From contig OZ286472.1 in assembly GCA_965644265.1 (NCBI GenBank), positions 74,214,001 through 74,278,000 on the forward strand: a stretch of 64,000 nt of DNA. Reading direction: 5' to 3'. Made by a program: the position numbers and the translations under genes. The notes below the pieces were generated by a model. It was not told the origin of the DNA and did not search any database. It saw only the letters and a program-made list of their open reading frames with translations. This DNA is from Glycera tridactyla. Lineage: Eukaryota. Shown here one piece after another: positions 46,650 to 63,720 of this stretch (within the stretch, counting starts at the first letter, position 1; every line of letters starts with the position of its first letter).

Positions 46650-46769
46650 CTACTTCTTGGAATCGTATTCCTTGTACTCTTGGGCGACGCCGCTGACTTC
46701 GGGGATGTCGATTTCGCCGCTGACGTCGGCCACCTCCCTCAGATCAGAGTCGAAGGCCAAGTTTTTGCC
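46650..46769 (-). CDS. RANBP2: RanBP2-like gene, apparent last coding exon (GKNLAFDSDLREVADVSGEIDIPEVSGVAQEYKEYDSKK*)
   Basis: Acceptor aatgtttgtag at 46770; phase 0 matches the donor at 50240; strong C/G-ending codon bias; TAG at 46652-46650; donor GAG|gtaag at 46626|46625. Confidence 0.65.
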   Translation of the reverse strand, partial: GKNLAFDSDLREVADVSGEIDIPEVSGVAQEYKEYDSKK

Positions 46770-46859: not shown

Positions 46860-47180
46860 GAGTGAAGTGGGAATGTTCAACATTAATGAAGTGGGAATGT
46901 TCAACAGTTATGAAGTGGGAATGTTCAACAGTTATGAAGCGGAAATGTTCAACAGTTATGAAGTGGGAATGTCCAACATTTATGGAGTGGGAACGTTCAA
47001 CATTTTCGAAGTGGAAACCTTCAACACTTACGAAGTGGGAACGTTCAATACTTATGAAGTGGGAATGTTCAACAATTATGAATGGGTATGTTCAACATTT
47101 ATGAAGTGGAAACGTTTAATGTGTATGAAGTGGGAATGTTCAACATTTATTAAGTGGGTATGTTCAACATTTATAAAGAG
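46860..47180. repeat. 24-bp minisatellite (gaagtgggaatgttcaacagttat)n, about 13 copies
   Basis: Directly visible; source of the EVGMFNSY-repeat ORF. Confidence 0.95.
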
Positions 47181-49335: not shown

Positions 49336-50239
49336 TATATCACATATGAGACCTCCTCATCAACAGCATGGGGTTCATCTGATAACAATTTTTGAATAAT
49401 TTCATACCCCAGTCTTCTCTAAAAATCACAATCCGATGAAGTTTTGGCAGCCATATGACTCTTCAAATTTCTCGTACCAATGGAACCGACATCTTAAATG
49501 ATTCAGACTGCTTCTGAGTTGATTGATTGTTTCAGACCTTCTAATTTCTTGCCTTGCAATCTTATATGTCTATATTTGGCAGAATACAGATCGTCCATAC
49601 TCGATGATATGAATACGAGCTTGTGTCATATGATTGCCAAAACTTGTGAATGGTGGATGATGACAATGGCGATGATGATGACAGGAGGATGGATGATGAC
49701 GACAAAGATGACAACAATGAGGATGAGGAATAAATACGTCGATTACAACTAAAACTTCAGATCCCGACTAATTCAGGCTAAAGTGTGGCTGGCCGCTCGA
49801 CAGCCACTGCACGAGATACCAGACTGGTCCGATCACAAGATGAACTGTGTCTTGAACTGAAAGTACCTCGGTGAAGATTTTCCGGAAGCTGAATTTTCGG
49901 AAATATAGGAATATTTTCTGAAACTACCCGGTCAAGTGCTAAAGAGAAATTCAATTCGCTACATAATATCCGATACTGATGGCAGAAATGTGGTGGTGGT
50001 GGTAGGGGGATTATTGTGGGTGAATTCCCCACAATTTCATTTGTGATGCACTCAAGTCAATAACTTTACTAGAGGTTTCGACAAGTCTTCATGAATATGA
50101 AAAGGTTTGGGTCAGTTGGGGCTCGAAAAGTTTTCCTCGCTCTTTATGAATCCTGTGAGCAATTTGCGATTTCATTTCCGCTAAACAAAGGCAGCCATTT
50201 CTGATTCGGTATGACAGGCCGCAGCAGACCATATCTCAC

Positions 50240-50430
50240 CTTGTATTCATTGCCTTCAGAGTACATCATGGTGACGCACTTCGTGAAAAGCGGCTGGACG
50301 TTCTCTTCATCCTCGTCCTCGTCCTCGTCTTCGTCATCCTGCTGCTCGTTGATGATGCTAGTGTCCGCGGCGTCCTCGCTCTTCGACGTCTCGTCCAGAT
50401 TTTCGGCGGCTGCGCTCACTTCGCCTTCCT
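50240..50430 (-). CDS. RANBP2: RanBP2-like gene, acidic exon (EEGEVSAAAENLDETSK...DDEDEDEDEDEENVQPLFTKCVTMMYSEGNEYK)
   Basis: Acceptor gtttgtacag (50431), donor AAG|gtgaga (50240|50239); 191 nt, phase 1 to 0, matching both neighbours. Confidence 0.8.
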
Positions 50431-50898
50431 CTGTACAAACACAAACATCACGTTTAGTGACCATCCAAGGCTACACGATGCACTTCTGGAATGCCTACGT
50501 CGGCGCTAGCCATAAGCCGGGGGCTAATATTTTCTCATCTGGCTAAAGAAATCGACAAGTCTTTAGCCAAAGTTGCTACGAAGTGGACGGGAACTTATGC
50601 AGTCACTGTGATGTCAATAACTTTCAAGGGCAATTTTTTGGGAAACATGGTTGATTTCTCTGAAACTATCCCAATATGACAAATAAAATAAAGAAATTTC
50701 AATCAATCAATCAATATAGTGTGGGAAGTGTTGATTCCAACAATGTCTGAAATTCGATCTTTCATCCCAATTCCAGAGTTAGTTGAGATTTTCAGAAGAA
50801 TCGTCATTACTAATTGTATAAAAGAGCAGACCCATAAGAAAAGAAGATCAAGCAATTACACCCCTAAAAGTTTTCTTCACTCAGTTGGAATCGGCATA

Positions 50899-54918: not shown

Positions 54919-56133
54919 CTTCAGCGGCCACCGTCCCTACACAGAGACCAGAACTCAGCATCTGATCTTCAACCGACTGTTGTAAACTTTTGCCCGACGG
55001 CTCCAGATCAAGCTCCGCGGCGTAGTAGACATTCCCTCGATCGCCAGTCGTGTGGGCTGTACTTTCGACGAATAGCTCCTCCTGATTGATATCCTCAGAG
55101 GGCGAATGTTTGCTTCCGACAAATGTATATGCAGTCACTAAATTTGATTCGTGCGTCTCGACATAATTGCTCGGACGTTCGGCCAAGTTATCCAAATCGT
55201 CGGTGTGGTATGGGTTGCCAGCATCCCCGGTGTAATCAATTCTCTCCGGTACAATGACATCGACCGACCCAGTGAAATCACCGCTACTTCGTTTCTCTTC
55301 CTGACTAATGTGATCTTCCAATGAGTGGAAATATTCGGGAATCTCGCCGTCAGAATATTCAACACCACGAGGGTCGCCAGCACCCAACGTATAATACGTC
55401 TCGTCCGCAAAATATGGCGTGCCACTGACCAATTCTTCTGCATAATATGGATTTCCTCGATCTCCCGTATAGTTAGCAAATTCTGCAGAGATAGGACTTT
55501 CAACAGAACTGTTCAGCACAGCAGCATAATACGGATTTCCACGATCTCCGGTATAGTTAGCAATTTCCGCCTTGACAGGACTTTCAACAGAACTGTTCAG
55601 CTGAGCCGCGTAGTGTGGGTTTCCCCGGTCTCCCGTAACATTAGCAATTTCTGCAGAGATGGGACTTTCCACAGAACTGTTCAGCTGAGCTGCGTAGTGT
55701 GGGTTTCCCCGGTCTCCTGTAACATTAGCAATTTCTGCAGAGATGGGACTTTCAACAGAACTGTTCAGCTGAGCCGCGTAGTACGGGTTTCCCCGGTCTC
55801 CCGTAACGTTAGCAATTTCTGCAGAGATGGGACTTTCCACAGATCTGTTGAGCTCAGCTGTGTAGTACGGGTTTCCCTGATCTCCGGTTATACAAGCAGA
55901 CTCGGGAACGACATCAGCTTCCACTGTAGCAGGTATGACTGCGTCCCCACTTTGCGAGACGATCAGCGCTTCCAGAGACCTGAAGCATCCTTCAGACTCC
56001 GGAGCCTCACTTGCAAGCATTTCCTCCGCAAGATTGGCACCGCCGGTCACCAACGCCGCCGCCGACGTCACAATGTTGTCCTCCTCCTCGCTGTCCTCCG
56101 AGTGAGTGACAGATTCATCCACCTTCCGCTCAC
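54919..56133 (-). CDS. RANBP2: RanBP2-like gene, 1215-nt acidic repeat-containing exon
   Basis: Acceptor gactttctctcag (56134) and donor GAAG|gtacat (54919|54918); phase 1-1; open for 405 codons; joins VLES-G-ERKV upstream and AAE-E-EGEV downstream. Confidence 0.75.
55430..55890 (-). repeat. Coding tandem repeat, 84 nt / 28 aa, about 5.5 copies (TGDRGNPYYAAQLNSSVESPISAEIANV)
   Basis: ttccccggtctcc recurs at 84-nt spacing (e.g. 55621, 55705); two further degenerate motifs lie at ~55210 and ~55030. Confidence 0.95.
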
Positions 56134-56907
56134 CTGAGAGAAAGTCAAGCTCGTGCAAGAACTAGAATTTCATTGGGCCTTTTCCCCTTACAGAGGCCAT
56201 GATTCTATGTATCACATTGTTATTACACTTGAGAACAAAGTAGAGTCTAACCTGCCCTAAGCAGCCACTTTCAATTTTCCCATCAGAGTTTTTTCCACCA
56301 TAATTCACCAAATTGACTTTTTTTGTCATATCCATGGCTTGCTTTACTTCTGATAGGAGAGATGGAAATCCGTGGAACGATCCCATCCCTGAGCTACATG
56401 TAGGTCACTAACCCAACAGCAACACTTCATAGTGAAACACCTAAGCCAATTGTTGGCTGCTCTCCAAAGACACCCTGAATTACCCACTGAAGACTAGGAC
56501 AACAGGTGAGAGGATAATGGCAGTTTCGTATTACATGTCTGTGTACGCTGCACACATGTGATGGAAAATAACACTCCGCCTTGCAGTTTCACGTGCGCTG
56601 TCTGCCAAACAATCTTTGACACTGGTGCAAGGACTTGATTGGATATCGGTAACACTGCACTAAGGGCCTCAAAAAGACGGACAGTTGAAAACTAATCGGT
56701 TGCACGGAGCACACTGGATGGTCCATCACACAGATAGTGGTGTATTTGTGAGGGAATAGTGTGTGCCAGGTGAACAATACACGCCCAAAATTTGCACGCC
56801 AAGTATCTTAAAAACCCACCCAGATTGCACACAAAATTAAATGCACACCTTCCGAGTGAAGTTTGGTGTTGATCCAGAAAGGGACGAGATTTGTCACAGG
56901 GACTCAC

Positions 56908-56980
56908 CTGATTCTAGCACGGCAATCTCCACTTGGCACTCCTCAAATTTCGCTTTGAATTGTTGTGCTAGTTCTTTCGT
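56908..56980 (-). CDS. RANBP2: RanBP2-like gene, RanBD C-terminal exon (TKELAQQFKAKFEECQVEIAVLES)
   Basis: Acceptor ccatttacag (56981), donor CAG|gtgagt (56908|56907); 73 nt, phase 0 to 1; F...FEECQ end of a RanBD. Confidence 0.9.
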
Positions 56981-58357
56981 CTGTAAATGGAGAAACAGAT
57001 TTGTGTGAACATGAATAGAATAAACAGTGATGAAAGTGGCCCATGACCAAATTTCCTGAAAAGTGCGTAAACCCATTTTGCAGGATCCACGAACTTACAC
57101 TGGGCGCGTTTGTGACAGTGATGATTATCATGCAGATACTACTATCATTATCTCTCCTGGAATAATATACTTTGAACACGAACTGAAACTAAGGAAAAAA
57201 AGACACTAGAGGATACAGAAATGTATGTTTCAGGGTCCATATAAACTTATCACTTGATCTACCCTTCACTACATTTTCACCTTCCCTGTTTCATATGATT
57301 ATGGACTAAATCAATGTTACACCTTTGAAAAACTTTGGAAATCCTCCCTATTTTTGTTGCCACAACTTCAAATATCTGTTTGACCTCCAAGACAGAAGCT
57401 GTCCAGCAATGGTTAGTTGTGGGTGGTAATCAAACAGCATTGACCATCAAATTTAGGGGGCAAGATTAGTCCTCCTTGCCTCCCACCAACATAAACAGAC
57501 TGACTCTTAAAAAAATAATGAGCCACTTCTGATTTCCGGAGAACATCAATATCATTAGGTCATTTCCGGAATTCCGGATATATCCGGAATACTTTCATCA
57601 CTGAATAAATCACAATCGCTCAAGAAGAGAATAAATGGCCACTTTTTTCTATAGCCCTTGCGTCGGACATAGGAGCTGAACACTGTCAGAAACTTGAATG
57701 TCATCATGATCTAAAATCACAATGGAAGGACCAAAAGTATTGTTAATGTGAAGACATTCAACTTCCACAAGAATAAAGCACATTTTGGAATACAATGAAG
57801 AAACTGATGCATGGTATTCACAGGTGAGAAATGATAGCCTCCCATTGCTCGAAACTGACGAACATATTGGACGTTCAAAAAACGTTCTTATTCTTAGGGG
57901 CGGCCAGCTTTCAAATTCTTCTGCTCGCCGGGCGATCAGATTCAACAAACACCTTAAGGGCTGGTCTAAGACATGCATACCAGGTGTTTATATCGAAGGT
58001 TTGACAGTGGAATGAGATGACATAATTTTCAGAAATGATCCCCATGAATTCTCAACACACCTACTCAAACTTTTCAGCAAGATTTCAGACAATATCCCAT
58101 TCCGAATTCCCCCCCACCAAATTTCAGAGTTCCAAAAAATTTCGAACCATTGGAATCACTGTGAGTAGATAGTTTCAATATAATGAGGTTGAATTTTCGA
58201 AAGTGTGGATGAATTTACTGAAATGACTCCCACATATTCTCATAAGTATCTATTCTGAAACTTGCAGCCAGATTTCAGGCAATTTCTCTACTTAAATTTT
58301 TCACAAAATATTTGAAATTCCAAAAATTTTCGGAAAATTAAACAACGAGACAATTAC

Positions 58358-58533
58358 CTTGAACTTGACGGCAAACTGTTCGAGTTTGGCTTCGTTTTCG
58401 GTGAAGTCGAGAGCGTTCCAGCAGTAGGACACCTCCGAGCACATCAGCCGCTTGAGATGCATCTCCGTCGTCAGCTGGTGATTGCACGCAATCTTGTGGA
58501 TCTGTTCGCGCCGCATCAAGACACGGATTTTGC
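58358..58533 (-). CDS. RANBP2: RanBP2-like gene, RanBD middle exon (GKIRVLMRREQIHKIACNH...KLEQFAVKFK)
   Basis: Acceptor atttcag (58534), donor AAG|gtaatt (58358|58357); MRREQ..K..NH and EQ.AV.FK RanBD motifs. Confidence 0.95.
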
Positions 58534-59819
58534 CTGAAATTAACAATACAAAGATGGCAACCTCTGAAGGACAAGAATAGTAGCGTTGCCAATTTCAAGG
58601 AGTGGCAGGCCAGCCCTTGCCATTGGAATAATGTCAACAGGACAACTTGTATTTTTCAAGACAAATCGCCGTTTTTCAGGATATCTTCAGGACGCTGCGA
58701 ACCCTGCACAAATATTCAAAGATAATGTTGAAAATATCCTAAAACATGAAGACTGACTAAAAGGAGCTTCAATGATAACCGGAACATCTATAAAGTACAT
58801 TGCATTAAAATAAAACTCAGATGAGAAATGGCGAATTGATTGTGTGAAACATACCCACCACATTTGGATTTGGCAGAGTTTAGTCACTATGCCAAAATCA
58901 TGGAGGTAGGCTTCTCTCTTAGATAGTGGTGGGCCAATGATCGAATATACTCGATGATCGGTGGTTCACATCGCCAAACCATGCGCTTACTTACGAAATT
59001 CAACAATCGATTTAATCAAAATGATCATCGCACAAACTCAGGATTGAAAAGCACGTAATGTATCATGCATCCGTCAAAATCAAGGTGAAAAGCGGGCTTA
59101 TTATTTGGCGGCCAGAGAAACGAACATGCTGCCGCCATTTCGGTTGTTGACAGTCCGATAGTTTCAACATGCGCAATTAGTTCCCAGTCAAACCGCCAGG
59201 TGGGGGAGTTTGGCGCAATGACCATATCGACATCTAGCAGTTGGAATGTGAACCAGACTGATCGCAAGCCAATTGATGATTGCTTGCGAACATGCAACTG
59301 ATTCCCAACACCACTCTTAGAGCACAAGGGCGAGTACATGGTGACAAAGCGAGGGTATAACGGATGGATTAAAAAACTGTGAGACCTGAAAGACTTAGAG
59401 CTTTGTCACGGACATGCCTAAAAATACTCCCACCACCTCTTTGACATTAAGAATGTATGCAAATAATGCTGGACATAACAAATGCTACTAGCCCCCTCCC
59501 CCCCCATATTGAGATTGCCTCAAACTCGTAGCTACTTGCCTTGAAAGGAGTGCAACCCTCTTGCTGATTTAGGGGGCATCATGGCCCCTAGTTACTTCAC
59601 AAAAGGGGCTATGCTCGAGAAAATGTGTGAAATGCCCCGATGCCCCCCACACAACTCTGGAATGACTGGATCTATCGGCATGAAAATTGTGTCTTGCACA
59701 TCTACACTTCATGGTGATGATACGTTTCAAGTTTCAATCCAATAGCCTAACAAGTGGGAGTAGTTGTATGAAAATACCACCATCTCCACGTCACTCACCA
59801 CCATCTCCACGTCACTCAC

Positions 59820-60092
59820 CAGTCTGAGGATCCCGCAATAATTTCATTTCTCCGATGCCTCGCTCTTTCCACCGGTTGTCAGTGAAGCGGAAGAGTTTTG
59901 CGCGGTGACTGTAGACCACCTCTTCGTCCTCCTCTCCCGTCTTCACCTCGATCTCCGGTAGCTCGACGAGAGGCTCAAAATGGATGTCGTTGCTCGGGGC
60001 CACGTCACCATCTTCTCCGTCTTCAGTGGCCGACTTGTTAAACACTGAAGCACCGGCTCCGGCAAACGCGAACGGCTTGTCGCCATCGCCAC
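59820..60092 (-). CDS. RANBP2: RanBP2-like gene, RanBD N-terminal exon ([15 protein letters not shown]...[35 protein letters not shown]...[12 protein letters not shown])
   Basis: Acceptor tgctttag (60093), donor ACTG|gtgagt (59820|59819); FEP...[17 protein letters not shown] and WKERG signatures; the preceding F.FAGAG..VF segment is RanBP2-like rather than RanBP1-like. Confidence 0.95.
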
Positions 60093-60169
60093 CTAAAGCA
60101 AATCGGAAGAGGCGACATTTGAATTACACACAATAAACTTCAACACTTGCATCTATGGGTTGGGTGACT

Positions 60170-61147: not shown

Positions 61148-62269
61148 CTATTTATGGCGAATTTCTGTGGGCCTCAACACCGCTGAGGCAAATTCATCGT
61201 GCTGATGAATTGGTTTGTGATAGTGTCTCGCAAATGTGGACTCATTTGACTATCATGCAGCCTTCATTATCGAAGATATTGGCAGGGACATGGCAGCTTT
61301 GCTTGTTGAAGCTGATCGCGTACTGTGTGCAGTATAGATCTCTACATCTATACCCGCCTCTTTCATCATGCTCTTTATCCATCTCTTTATGGTATCCCTG
61401 GTGGCAGGTCCATAAGGTTTGACAGTGATCAGAAAAAGTCTTTCGCTTGTAGTTCTGACATAATTACTGCGACGGATATATTCTCGTAGGCAGGTCAATA
61501 CACATAAGTTTTCCTCATGAAATTTAGGAAAGTGAACAGTCAAAGGTACTCCTTTCTTTTTACACTTGAGTCTGTCCATCACCACAAAACATGCACAATC
61601 TTCTGATAATTTCATGGTATTCAGATTAAGCAAATGTAGAGTTTGTGAGCGTTGCCCTGTTACTAGGGCAGCTAACATTGCAAGTTTATGTGTCAGCATT
61701 CTGAGAGGTAGCTCTGTATTGCATGGTAAATTCCGGATGTAGGCTAGGACTACATCTGGATCCCATACTTCTGTATGTACTTTAGAAGGTGCTTGTCCTT
61801 CTGCTATACCCTTCATTAGTCTATCCAGGAGGAAGGAATGAGGAGTAAAGTTCAAGTTAAAAGAAATAACGTTCATGACTGCGGCCTTGGCCGTATTGAT
61901 AGTGCTATATGATAGTCCCCTATCTTTGAGATGCATGATGAATTCAGCTAATTCTCTGTCCATAGGAAGACTGGGATTGTAATTCCGTCTCTCTGCAAAA
62001 CTTTGCCACTGGCGAATGTAGCATGAGTATTGGGTTCGAGTTCCAATACTCCATGATTTGATACAAGTCTCTGCAATTTCTTTTGGAATGCCGAGATTTT
62101 GCAATGCATCCCCGAGATCAGTCCTGCAATCAGTCTCATTTGAGGGTAGAGAGGGTGGATCCTCTCTGGGTCGAATGGTAGACGTAGTAGGGTATGTCGA
62201 TTCGGCAGAATCACTGGATATTCTATCAGTAAGTTCAGGAATTGCACGAACCAATGTTGGGTTGTCCAT
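61148..62269 (-). pseudogene. DIRS tyrosine recombinase with premature TGA-TAG
   Basis: LAALVTGQRSQTL and YTAHSTRSAS motifs; frame reads IMKAA**SNESTFARHYHKP, stops at 61255-61250, natural TAG at 61150-61148. Confidence 0.9.
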
Positions 62270-62900
62270 ATTGGTACTACCATGAGGGTGGTAGATTGTT
62301 CTTCTTGAACTTTTTTCAGGACTCGTGAGATGATACTAAAAGGAGGAAATGCATAGTTTATATCATTTCCCCAGCCATGTAGGAATGCATCTGTATGGAT
62401 TGCTAATGGGTCTGGCCTCCATGAAATGAACTTCTGTAATTGCGTATTTAATCTACTGGCAAACAGGTCTATTTCTGGATATGTTCCCAATTTATGGCAG
62501 ATCCATTCAAAGATTGATGGGTCTAGTTGCCACTCTGTCCGATCATTCTGTGTTCTGCTTTCCATATCAGCCATGATATTGGAAGATCCTTCAGTATATA
62601 TTGCAGACAGCCAGATGTTTTTGTTGATGGCCCAAGTCCAAATTTCTCTGGCTATGAGATTGCGGTGGACTGAGCGACAACTACCCATTTCATTGATATA
62701 ACAGACTGTGGTTACATTATCTGATAGGATCTGAATATGGCAGTCATTCAAATGTTTGCAAAGCGATTGAATTCCATATTTGACAGCAAGAAGTTCTAAA
62801 CTATTGATGTGTAACATTTGTTCATTCTGATTCCAATGTCCATTGGTAGATGATGCCATAGATGTTGCACCCCAACCAGAATTGGATGCATCTGTAAAGG
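61948..62900 (-). pseudogene. DIRS RNase H plus N6-adenine DNA methyltransferase domains (frameshifted from RT)
   Basis: FTDASNSGWG, HINSLELLAV, ILSDNVTTVCYIN, PEIDLFAS, NYAFPPF, VVPIWTTQHWF. Confidence 0.9.
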
Positions 62901-63720
62901 CTGACAATCTATGGTTGGTGGCATAACTGGTTTGGGACAATGTATTGCACTTGATAACCACCAGTAGATATCTTGTACAGAGGCTTCAGATATTGACATG
63001 ATAATGTCCAGACATCCCCGGCTTAATTTTAGAGCAGCGTTTTTGTCTATTTCTAATAGATGCTTGTACAAATATGTGTATTTTACACCTAATTTGCATG
63101 ATTCTACCGTACCAATGAAGCGCATGGTTTGTCTGATGGTAGGTATTCTTGTCAAGAGGGGACCTGCTCTTTCTATAAGTTTCTGGAGTCTCTCTTGGGT
63201 GATGTTCACTTGCATCAGTTTGGTATTAAAATGAAAGCCTAAATGTTCCATCTCCTGAGTGGGGATAGTAACCGATTTGGCAATATTCACTCTGAAACCT
63301 AGGTTTCTGAGGACTGAAATGCTTGAATGAATATCTTCCAGGCATTTCTCTCTTGATGGTGAGACAATAAAAATGTCATCAAGATAATTACTGACTGTAA
63401 TACCCTTCTGTTGCAAATGGGACATCACTGGCTGCATGATCTTAGTAAAGATCCAGGGTGCACATGCTAACCCTTGAGGCATTCCAATGAGTTTATAATG
63501 ATAGTTTTGCCAAGCAAATTTAAGAAATCTTTGGTAAAACTCTGATACTTTGACCGTGAAATATGTGTCTTGCAAATCTAATGAAGCAAGATATGCATCT
63601 CTAAAGATCATGGTTGCACATATTTCAACTGCTGCCATTTTGAAATGGCGATATATTATTTCTTGTTTGATGGGTCGTAAATTTATTATCATCCTAAATT
63701 TTTTCCCATCACGTTTTACA
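62901..63720 (-). pseudogene. DIRS reverse transcriptase
   Basis: KRDGKKFRMIINLR, ASLDLQDTYF, GMPQGLACAPWIFTK, SNYLDDIFI, LGFRVNIAKS, EHLGF; frame broken at ~63720 and ~62900. Confidence 0.9.

Follow-up and report, generated by a model that had tools for sequence, protein, structure and literature searches.

A giant coding exon in a RanBP2-like gene

The stretch of contig OZ286472.1 analysed here, 64,000 nucleotides (nt) long and called the window below, carries on its minus strand a RanBP2-like gene with a giant coding exon of 1215 nt (405 x 3) that runs from 56133 to 54919 and encodes eight copies of a short motif. Our best reading is that the exon displays a linear motif, (hydrophobic)-T-G-D-[KR]-G-N-P-[YH]-Y-x-x-E-L-[DEN], which the papers and databases searched do not describe. 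A preliminary description of the window had proposed an exon of this length and of symmetric phase (1-1) behind a Ran-binding domain, with six motifs spaced by 28 amino acids (aa) and two degenerate copies in an acidic low-complexity region. The reading frame, the splice signals and Tandem Repeats Finder (TRF) bear this out. The minus-strand frame 54920-56131 is free of stops over 404 codons, and an AG lies ahead of 56133 and a GT behind 54919. The phase was read off the frames of the flanking upstream exons and is 1-1 because the exon at 56908-56980 leaves one nt of a codon, to which the giant exon adds the other two before leaving one nt at its own end.

Evidence of expression comes from Logan contigs of four runs (X1, X2, X5 and X6, from two studies with two organism labels), which we take as RNA because they contain spliced joints, the run records being silent on this point. 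Contigs of X1 and X2 run from 60096-59819 through 58532-58358 and 56980-56908 into 56133 and onward, and contigs of all four runs break off from the locus exactly at 54919, with 28-781 further nt beyond the aligned 6-kb stretch. Every intron in these contigs reads CT..AC on the plus strand, that is, GT..AG on the minus strand. The giant exon is transcribed, and both of its splice sites are used as predicted. Since contigs cross the joint between 56908 and 56133 unbroken, inclusion should be at least the main form. No exon-skipped form was seen in the RNA contigs, which drop rare variants and whose downstream exon lies beyond the aligned 6-kb stretch; skipping is possible by frame arithmetic only.

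The host gene resembles RanBP2/Nup358 in its Ran-binding domains, which Pfam recognises as Ran_BP1 (Table 1), and from the translation a second, divergent Ran-binding domain begins near 50200. There is no cyclophilin domain of the kind that forms the vertebrate C-terminus: the frame ends at about 46653, directly after the last Ran-binding domain, and the related proteins P0006, P0012 and P0017 likewise end after theirs without a cyclophilin domain. The giant exon would be a normally included part of this nucleoporin, placed between one Ran-binding domain and an acidic tract followed by the last one.

Eight motif copies in one acidic segment

The exon product holds six TGD(R/Q)GNP(Y/H)Y units and two dispersed copies, TGDAGNPYH (aa 301) and TGDRGNVYY (aa 362). 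In the tandem block the G of GD(R/Q)GNP(Y/H)Y falls at aa 83, 111, 139, 167, 195 and 223, a spacing of exactly 28. All eight copies share G-x-x-G-N with an L seven residues past the N and score 35-53 bits against the motif profile A1 described below. At the DNA level units 1-5 are 77-94% identical (94% for units 2 and 3), and the tail of copy 6 is unlike the other spacers. In copy 5 the RNA contigs carry E, the consensus residue, in place of V. The segment is strongly acidic (isoelectric point 4.1; 72 D+E against 18 K+R) and contains neither FG nor GF dipeptides (0 and 0). The core TGD.GN.[YH][YH], observed eight times, had no match in any of 200,000 shuffles of the segment, and the profile found no further match in all other open stretches of the 64-kb window in six frames.

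Table 1. The giant exon, its motif copies and the other mapped parts of the RanBP2-like gene, in window coordinates
Feature	Position	Strand	Evidence or remark
Giant coding exon of the RanBP2-like gene	54919..56133	-	Open frame; splice joints in RNA contigs; AlphaFold2 mean pLDDT 34
Tandem array of 84-nt (28-aa) units, core of the six-unit block	55452..55885	-	TRF period 84, 5.2 copies, 87% match
Motif copy 1, TGDQGNPYYTAEL, aa 82-94	55850..55888	-	46 bits against the profile
Motif copy 2, TGDRGNPYYAAQL, aa 110-122	55766..55804	-	53 bits
Motif copy 3, TGDRGNPHYAAQL, aa 138-150	55682..55720	-	52 bits
Motif copy 4, TGDRGNPHYAAQL, aa 166-178	55598..55636	-	51 bits
Motif copy 5, TGDRGNPYYAAVL, aa 194-206	55514..55552	-	50 bits
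Motif copy 6, TGDRGNPYYAEEL, aa 222-234, last of the tandem block	55430..55468	-	44 bits; core identical in the orthologue P0001
Dispersed motif copy 7, TGDAGNPYHTDDL, aa 301-313	55193..55231	-	35 bits; position kept in P0001
Dispersed motif copy 8, TGDRGNVYYAAEL, aa 362-374	55010..55048	-	38 bits; position kept in P0001
Ran-binding domain ahead of the array, first exon	59819..60096	-	Pfam Ran_BP1 E=2.2e-15; joint 59819/58532 in RNA contigs; 60096 is not a mapped exon border
Ran-binding domain ahead of the array, second exon	58358..58532	-	Pfam Ran_BP1 E=2e-17; joints 59819/58532 and 58358/56980
Ran-binding domain ahead of the array, third and last exon, 73 nt, ending in phase 1	56908..56980	-	Joints 58358/56980 and 56908/56133; reading frame
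Open stretch with acidic tract and start of the divergent last Ran-binding domain	50147..50470	-	Translation; order as in P0006, P0012 and P0017; limits are those of the open stretch
Probable last coding stretch, ending in a stop after the last Ran-binding domain	46653..46769	-	Weak, concordant tblastn matches of the P0006, P0012 and P0017 C-termini

The motif recurs in three kinds of scaffold protein

A word search with the exon returned eight proteins with a common core. They include one from Batillaria, in which three units stand together with an acidic tract and a Ran-binding domain, and a GRASP55/65 homologue from Babylonia whose tail holds four copies. Profile A1, built from 46 aligned instances over 32 columns and scored against 1.84 billion representative proteins, matched 97 proteins at E<=1e-3, of which 34 reached <=1e-10 and 10 reached <=1e-30. 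By Pfam and by the names given in the sources, RanBP2 is a host in six gastropod genera (Batillaria, Candidula, Elysia, Plakobranchus, Haliotis and Biomphalaria); P0019 combines TPR with three Ran-binding domains, and relatives that share the array are named RanBP2 by their sources. In the window gene the N-terminal TPR region and the zinc-finger cluster of RanBP2 would fall upstream, past coordinate 64000 and hence outside the window.

The second host is FKBP15, with 11 copies of the motif in Lottia, 13 in Patella, 3-6 in Gigantopelta isoform X1, 5 or 8 in Pomacea and 6 in Batillaria. A partial protein from the annelid Owenia fusiformis (P0033) aligns to residues 935-994 of Lottia FKBP15 and then continues into its motifs, which identifies it as an annelid FKBP15. 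The third is GRASP, with 5 copies in isoforms of Littorina saxatilis and 2 or 4 in Babylonia. The motif is absent from FKBP15 as annotated in heterobranch snails, bivalves, Lingula, nemerteans, cnidarians, amphioxus, frogs and one spider, and among 120 GRASP orthologues it was found in none beyond those of Littorina saxatilis and Babylonia; such absences may reflect cassette exons missing from the gene models. Orphan proteins were matched as well, including one from Haliotis, as were orphan giant exons. Outside RanBP2 the motif lies in disordered tails of unrelated cytoplasmic scaffolds, alone or in arrays. When host genes were sought through the neighbours of orphan matches, only two contigs (L003 and L004) could be placed, both as FKBP15, with the motif exons just downstream of the FKBP15 exons by tblastn.

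Annotated isoforms of snail FKBP15 and GRASP (P0142/P0146, P0204/P0008, P0206/P0207/P0208 and P0107/P0108) differ by blocks of whole motif units, as cassettes of one or two motifs. In these source gene predictions the blocks span 28 and 60 aa for FKBP15 of Pomacea and 223 aa for that of Gigantopelta, and 30, 71 and 260 aa for GRASP of Littorina and 123 aa for that of Babylonia.

A single 4.6-kb open reading frame on a 2.7-Mb eukaryotic contig (L002 10001-14638) encodes a protein of 1545 aa (P0009) with 22 profile matches (14 by regular expression), most of them reading GDKGNVHY; no recognisable domain was found in it.

For the motif itself Pfam gave only sub-threshold chance matches (DUF1918, DUF7273 and TCAD3), and the profile matched nothing among all PDB sequences. 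The papers and databases searched held no description of the motif, in keeping with the earlier statement that no such array is known from characterised RanBP2/Nup358. These motif-bearing proteins also go unmentioned in a recent paper on actin-binding short linear motifs (PMC13364712, 2026).

Conservation sets the motif apart from NPxY

Across 225 unique instances gathered with the motif profile, the best-kept columns are the first G and the N (100% each), the second G (99%) and the L (98%). The others are weaker: D 85%, T 84%, K/R 85% and Pro 70%, with Val, Ile, Arg or Lys in its place elsewhere. The last Tyr stands in 80% of instances (His in 16%), and the first aromatic residue is Tyr in 48% and His in 39%, Phe being rare. 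Of 170 complete unique cores, 99% hold G..GN and 98% hold G..GN together with the L seven residues on.

These figures bear directly on the interpretation offered in the preliminary description, namely that the array consists of NPxY sites. NPxY is the docking motif for PTB and FERM domains and is often dependent on tyrosine phosphorylation. The likeness to the sites in LDL-receptor, integrin beta and APP tails is real, in that six of the eight exon copies read NPxY (one reads NPYH and one NVYY), the Asn is invariant family-wide and an aromatic residue occupies the Tyr position in 86% of the 170 cores; the cores would also fit the very permissive PTB-ligand pattern published in ELM. However, NPxY is intact in only 59% of the cores, Pro being replaced by Val, Ile, Arg, Lys or Leu and Tyr by His or Met, and whole orthologous arrays lack it (GNIYH in Candidula, GNPYM in Plakobranchus and GNRIY in Lottia FKBP15). 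At -5, where classical ligands have a hydrophobic residue, 85% of the cores carry K or R and only 2% a hydrophobic residue. The best-kept residues, G, G and L, fall outside NPxY, within conserved flanks that read G-D-[KR]-G before it and x-x-E-L-[DE] after it, and the frequent exchange of Tyr and His argues for an aromatic ring rather than a phospho-acceptor. Moreover, the motif occurs in arrays, and its context is a linker of nucleoporin, Golgi or endosomal scaffolds and not a membrane-proximal receptor tail. Judged by these two defining features, the NPxY core and the hydrophobic residue at -5, the motif appears to lie outside the NPxY class, and we consider it improbable that the copies act as genuine NPxY ligands of PTB or FERM domains, with or without prior phosphorylation of tyrosine. 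The NPxY match would instead be a by-product of a longer motif and not its core. For annotation this implies that the label 'NPxY array' misleads and that the exon should be treated as a conserved part of spiralian RanBP2, not as an optional oddity.

A comparison independent of the profile is offered by an orthologous exon (P0001), to which 68% of the motif columns are identical as against 46% elsewhere (Fisher p=0.0015, in a MAFFT alignment that misplaces two units). Among the tandem units of the window, seven of nine core codons vary synonymously and only two replacements occur (Q/R and Y/H), both of them tolerated family-wide, while the spacer has four synonymous and five replacement sites, the numbers being small. 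Variants in the RNA contigs spare the G, N and L, and two of them, Q85R and V205E, restore the consensus. On these sequence comparisons the motif is under constraint and has changed far less than the sequence around it.

The invariant Asn and the basic residue in a short, strictly conserved core, exposed in a disordered chain, might also point to a recognition or modification site for an enzyme rather than to stable docking, for instance for a kinase acting on the Tyr pair or for a modifier of the Asn or of the Lys/Arg. The substitutions speak against this: Lys and Arg interchange freely, as do Tyr and His, contrary to residue-specific modification, and arrays of up to 22 copies, as in P0009, are more typical of avidity than of regulation. 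We know of no enzyme consensus that fits the motif, which is not N-x-S/T, a SUMO consensus or S/T-P. We judge an enzymatic site to be about as doubtful as true NPxY docking.

Position and history of the array within RanBP2

The order of elements in Batillaria, Elysia and Plakobranchus RanBP2 is that of the window: a Ran-binding domain, an array of 28-aa units, an acidic tract, the last Ran-binding domain and the end of the protein. In the partial models from Candidula and Haliotis an array of 28- and 29-aa units directly follows a Ran-binding domain. Biomphalaria RanBP2 carries an array, too. The spacers of the window and gastropod arrays are alike, with E/Q-L-N, three variable residues, E, D/S and a hydrophobic residue. 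The array is thus not lineage-specific as first proposed, since it stands at the same RanBP2 site in five gastropod genera and occurs in a sixth, and the motif is also found in FKBP15 and GRASP.

The open reading frame P0001 is 51% identical to the exon over nearly its full length and represents the orthologous exon of a relative. It has both dispersed copies in place but two tandem units where the window has six, from which it follows that the dispersed copies predate the tandem expansion, as the preliminary description had suggested. 'Lineage-specific' would therefore seem to fit only the four extra tandem units. Copy number shifts by tandem duplication, as these close relatives with six and two units show, and in other host genes annotated isoforms differ by whole cassettes. 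If the window genome is that of an annelid, the RanBP2 array is common to annelids and gastropods and, together with Owenia FKBP15, this would date the origin of the motif to their common ancestor or earlier, unless it was gained repeatedly.

Another RanBP2 sequence (P0058, on L001 at 1071-2057) has two motif units between an element resembling the IR1 segment of the SUMO E3 region and FG repeats; the IR1-like element matches 3UIN_D at E=0.005 and Pfam IR1-M at E=0.001, which is under the cut-off of that family. This protein has no array ahead of its last Ran-binding domain. Its different placement indicates that the cassette either moved within one protein or arose there twice.

The recent tandem expansion, with units 2 and 3 still 94% identical in DNA, the difference in copy number between close relatives and the disordered context are also what would be expected of neutral repeat expansion or of coding filler derived from a transposon, without function. 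Such an origin would not explain why the dispersed copies and the position of the array are conserved with P0001 and gastropod RanBP2, why conservation lies at the protein level amid many synonymous differences, or why the motif appears in unrelated hosts with unrelated spacers. Within the window the motif occurs only in frame and in one exon, and no transposon domain lies in or beside that exon. We regard a functionless repeat as very improbable. A transposon origin in particular was considered and rejected: no copy of the motif exists elsewhere in the window, and the only nearby mobile element is an unrelated, DIRS-like one in an intron.

A candidate multivalent docking array

AlphaFold2 (AF2), run on the exon together with its two relatives, gave a mean predicted local distance difference test (pLDDT) score of 34, which indicates disorder. 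At very low confidence, each unit is modelled with a short helix that has the Pro next to the invariant Asn at its start. This model would fit an Asn cap followed by a helix with Tyr-Tyr and Leu on one side. Each unit could thus consist of a Gly-rich turn and then a short helix, beginning at the Pro, that presents the two Tyr and the Leu on one face.

We envision a scenario in which the array is a multivalent docking platform where the Gly-rich turn and the capped helix are recognised by one folded reader, a reading that we regard as evenly balanced. In this scenario the array would gather several copies of the putative reader at the pore's cytoplasmic filaments, its valency would be set by the number of repeats, and the same reader might be drawn to Golgi scaffolds through GRASP and to endosomal scaffolds through FKBP15. 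We further speculate, with a good deal less confidence, that spiralian animals (annelids and molluscs) use this so far unnamed motif for docking, and that through it one conserved cytosolic reader, such as a motor adaptor or a tether, is recruited in parallel to nuclear-pore filaments by RanBP2, to Golgi stacks by GRASP and to endosomes by FKBP15, the number of sites being tuned by tandem duplication and by the choice of cassette exons.

Were the motif indeed a docking site, it would represent a new class of linear motif with about 300 natural instances, in which the invariant G, G-N and L provide ready negative controls. It would also mean that, across a large clade of animals, scaffolds of the nuclear pore, the Golgi and the endosome share one partner, and would present a nucleoporin whose number of binding sites changes fast, with two against six tandem units in close relatives.

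Several points weigh against a docking array. The family-wide conservation figures are partly circular, the instances having been gathered with the motif profile, and the helix proposed for each unit rests on a model of very low confidence. The patchy occurrence of the motif in annotated FKBP15 and GRASP orthologues could mean repeated gain rather than one old function, or else unannotated cassette exons. Finally, a role as cohesive 'stickers' would fit the same data. Here the Tyr-Tyr pairs and the Arg/Lys residues in a flexible acidic chain would mediate self-association or condensation of RanBP2, GRASP and FKBP15 without a dedicated reader. Every unit offers aromatic and basic residues in a disordered context, multivalency varies by tandem expansion and cassette use, and each of the three hosts is a scaffold, a type of protein capable of forming condensates. 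Yet sticker sequences tolerate reshuffling, whereas G-D-[KR]-G-N ... L keep their order and spacing in 98-99% of cores, even between very distant hosts, as sites recognised by a folded surface typically do, and the strongly acidic linker disfavours simple Tyr/Arg coacervation. We therefore think stickers rather unlikely, if less so than an enzymatic site or true NPxY docking.

Docking of the units in cis on the adjoining Ran-binding domain, which has a PH-like fold as PTB domains do, was considered and found no support: in the AF2 model of the Batillaria protein P0006 the last Ran-binding domain is folded (pLDDT 70-90) and the three units stay below 40.

Comparison with known motif arrays

In its proposed mode of action the array is reminiscent of the endocytic NPF and DPF/DPW arrays of epsin, Eps15 and AP180, which likewise consist of many short motifs in long disordered regions, with variable spacers and with copy numbers that differ between species and isoforms. 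The window motif is longer, at about 14 residues, and Phe after N-P, as an EH-domain NPF ligand would have it, is rare. Similarly, the FG repeats of nucleoporins, including those that flank the Ran-binding domains of vertebrate RanBP2, are short motifs repeated in disordered linkers beside such domains. The exon differs from an FG linker in being devoid of FG and strongly acidic, and its motif also occurs in proteins that are not nucleoporins. To our knowledge none of the LIR, FFAT, ABBA, tankyrase, KEAP1, EF-hand loop, B56 LxxIxE, SIM and LC8 motifs fits the invariant residues, as compared by eye.

The IR1-M-IR2 region, the SUMO E3 of vertebrate RanBP2, also consists of internal repeats in the C-terminal part of the protein near the last Ran-binding domains, and in P0058 the two motif units directly follow the IR1-like element. 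The exon, in contrast, has no detectable similarity to Pfam IR1-M or to the RanBP2 chains of 1Z5S and 3UIN. Elysia and Biomphalaria have their IR1-like element ahead of the Ran-binding domain that comes before the array, and the corresponding element of the window gene may lie outside the window. That the exon is itself the counterpart of IR1-M-IR2, as a by-eye likeness of two short blocks had suggested, was rejected on these grounds: no similarity in Pfam or PDB, and an IR1-like element located elsewhere in gastropods.

Other features of the locus

The DIRS-like retroelement occupies 61253-63692 (minus strand) and sits within the intron that lies upstream of the exon for the Ran-binding domain. 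It comprises three overlapping open reading frames, encoding a reverse transcriptase (RVT_1, E=4e-21), an RNase H-like/methyltransferase-like product and a tyrosine recombinase (Phage_integrase, E=3e-7). A 24-nt minisatellite lies within the last intron of the gene (46863-47178; 13 copies, 84% match). Five further intron stretches (56240-56433, 57016-57597, 58180-58373, 58762-58955 and 59538-59731) reach a summed contig depth of hundreds to thousands in all four runs, with many loose ends, and look like expressed interspersed repeats.

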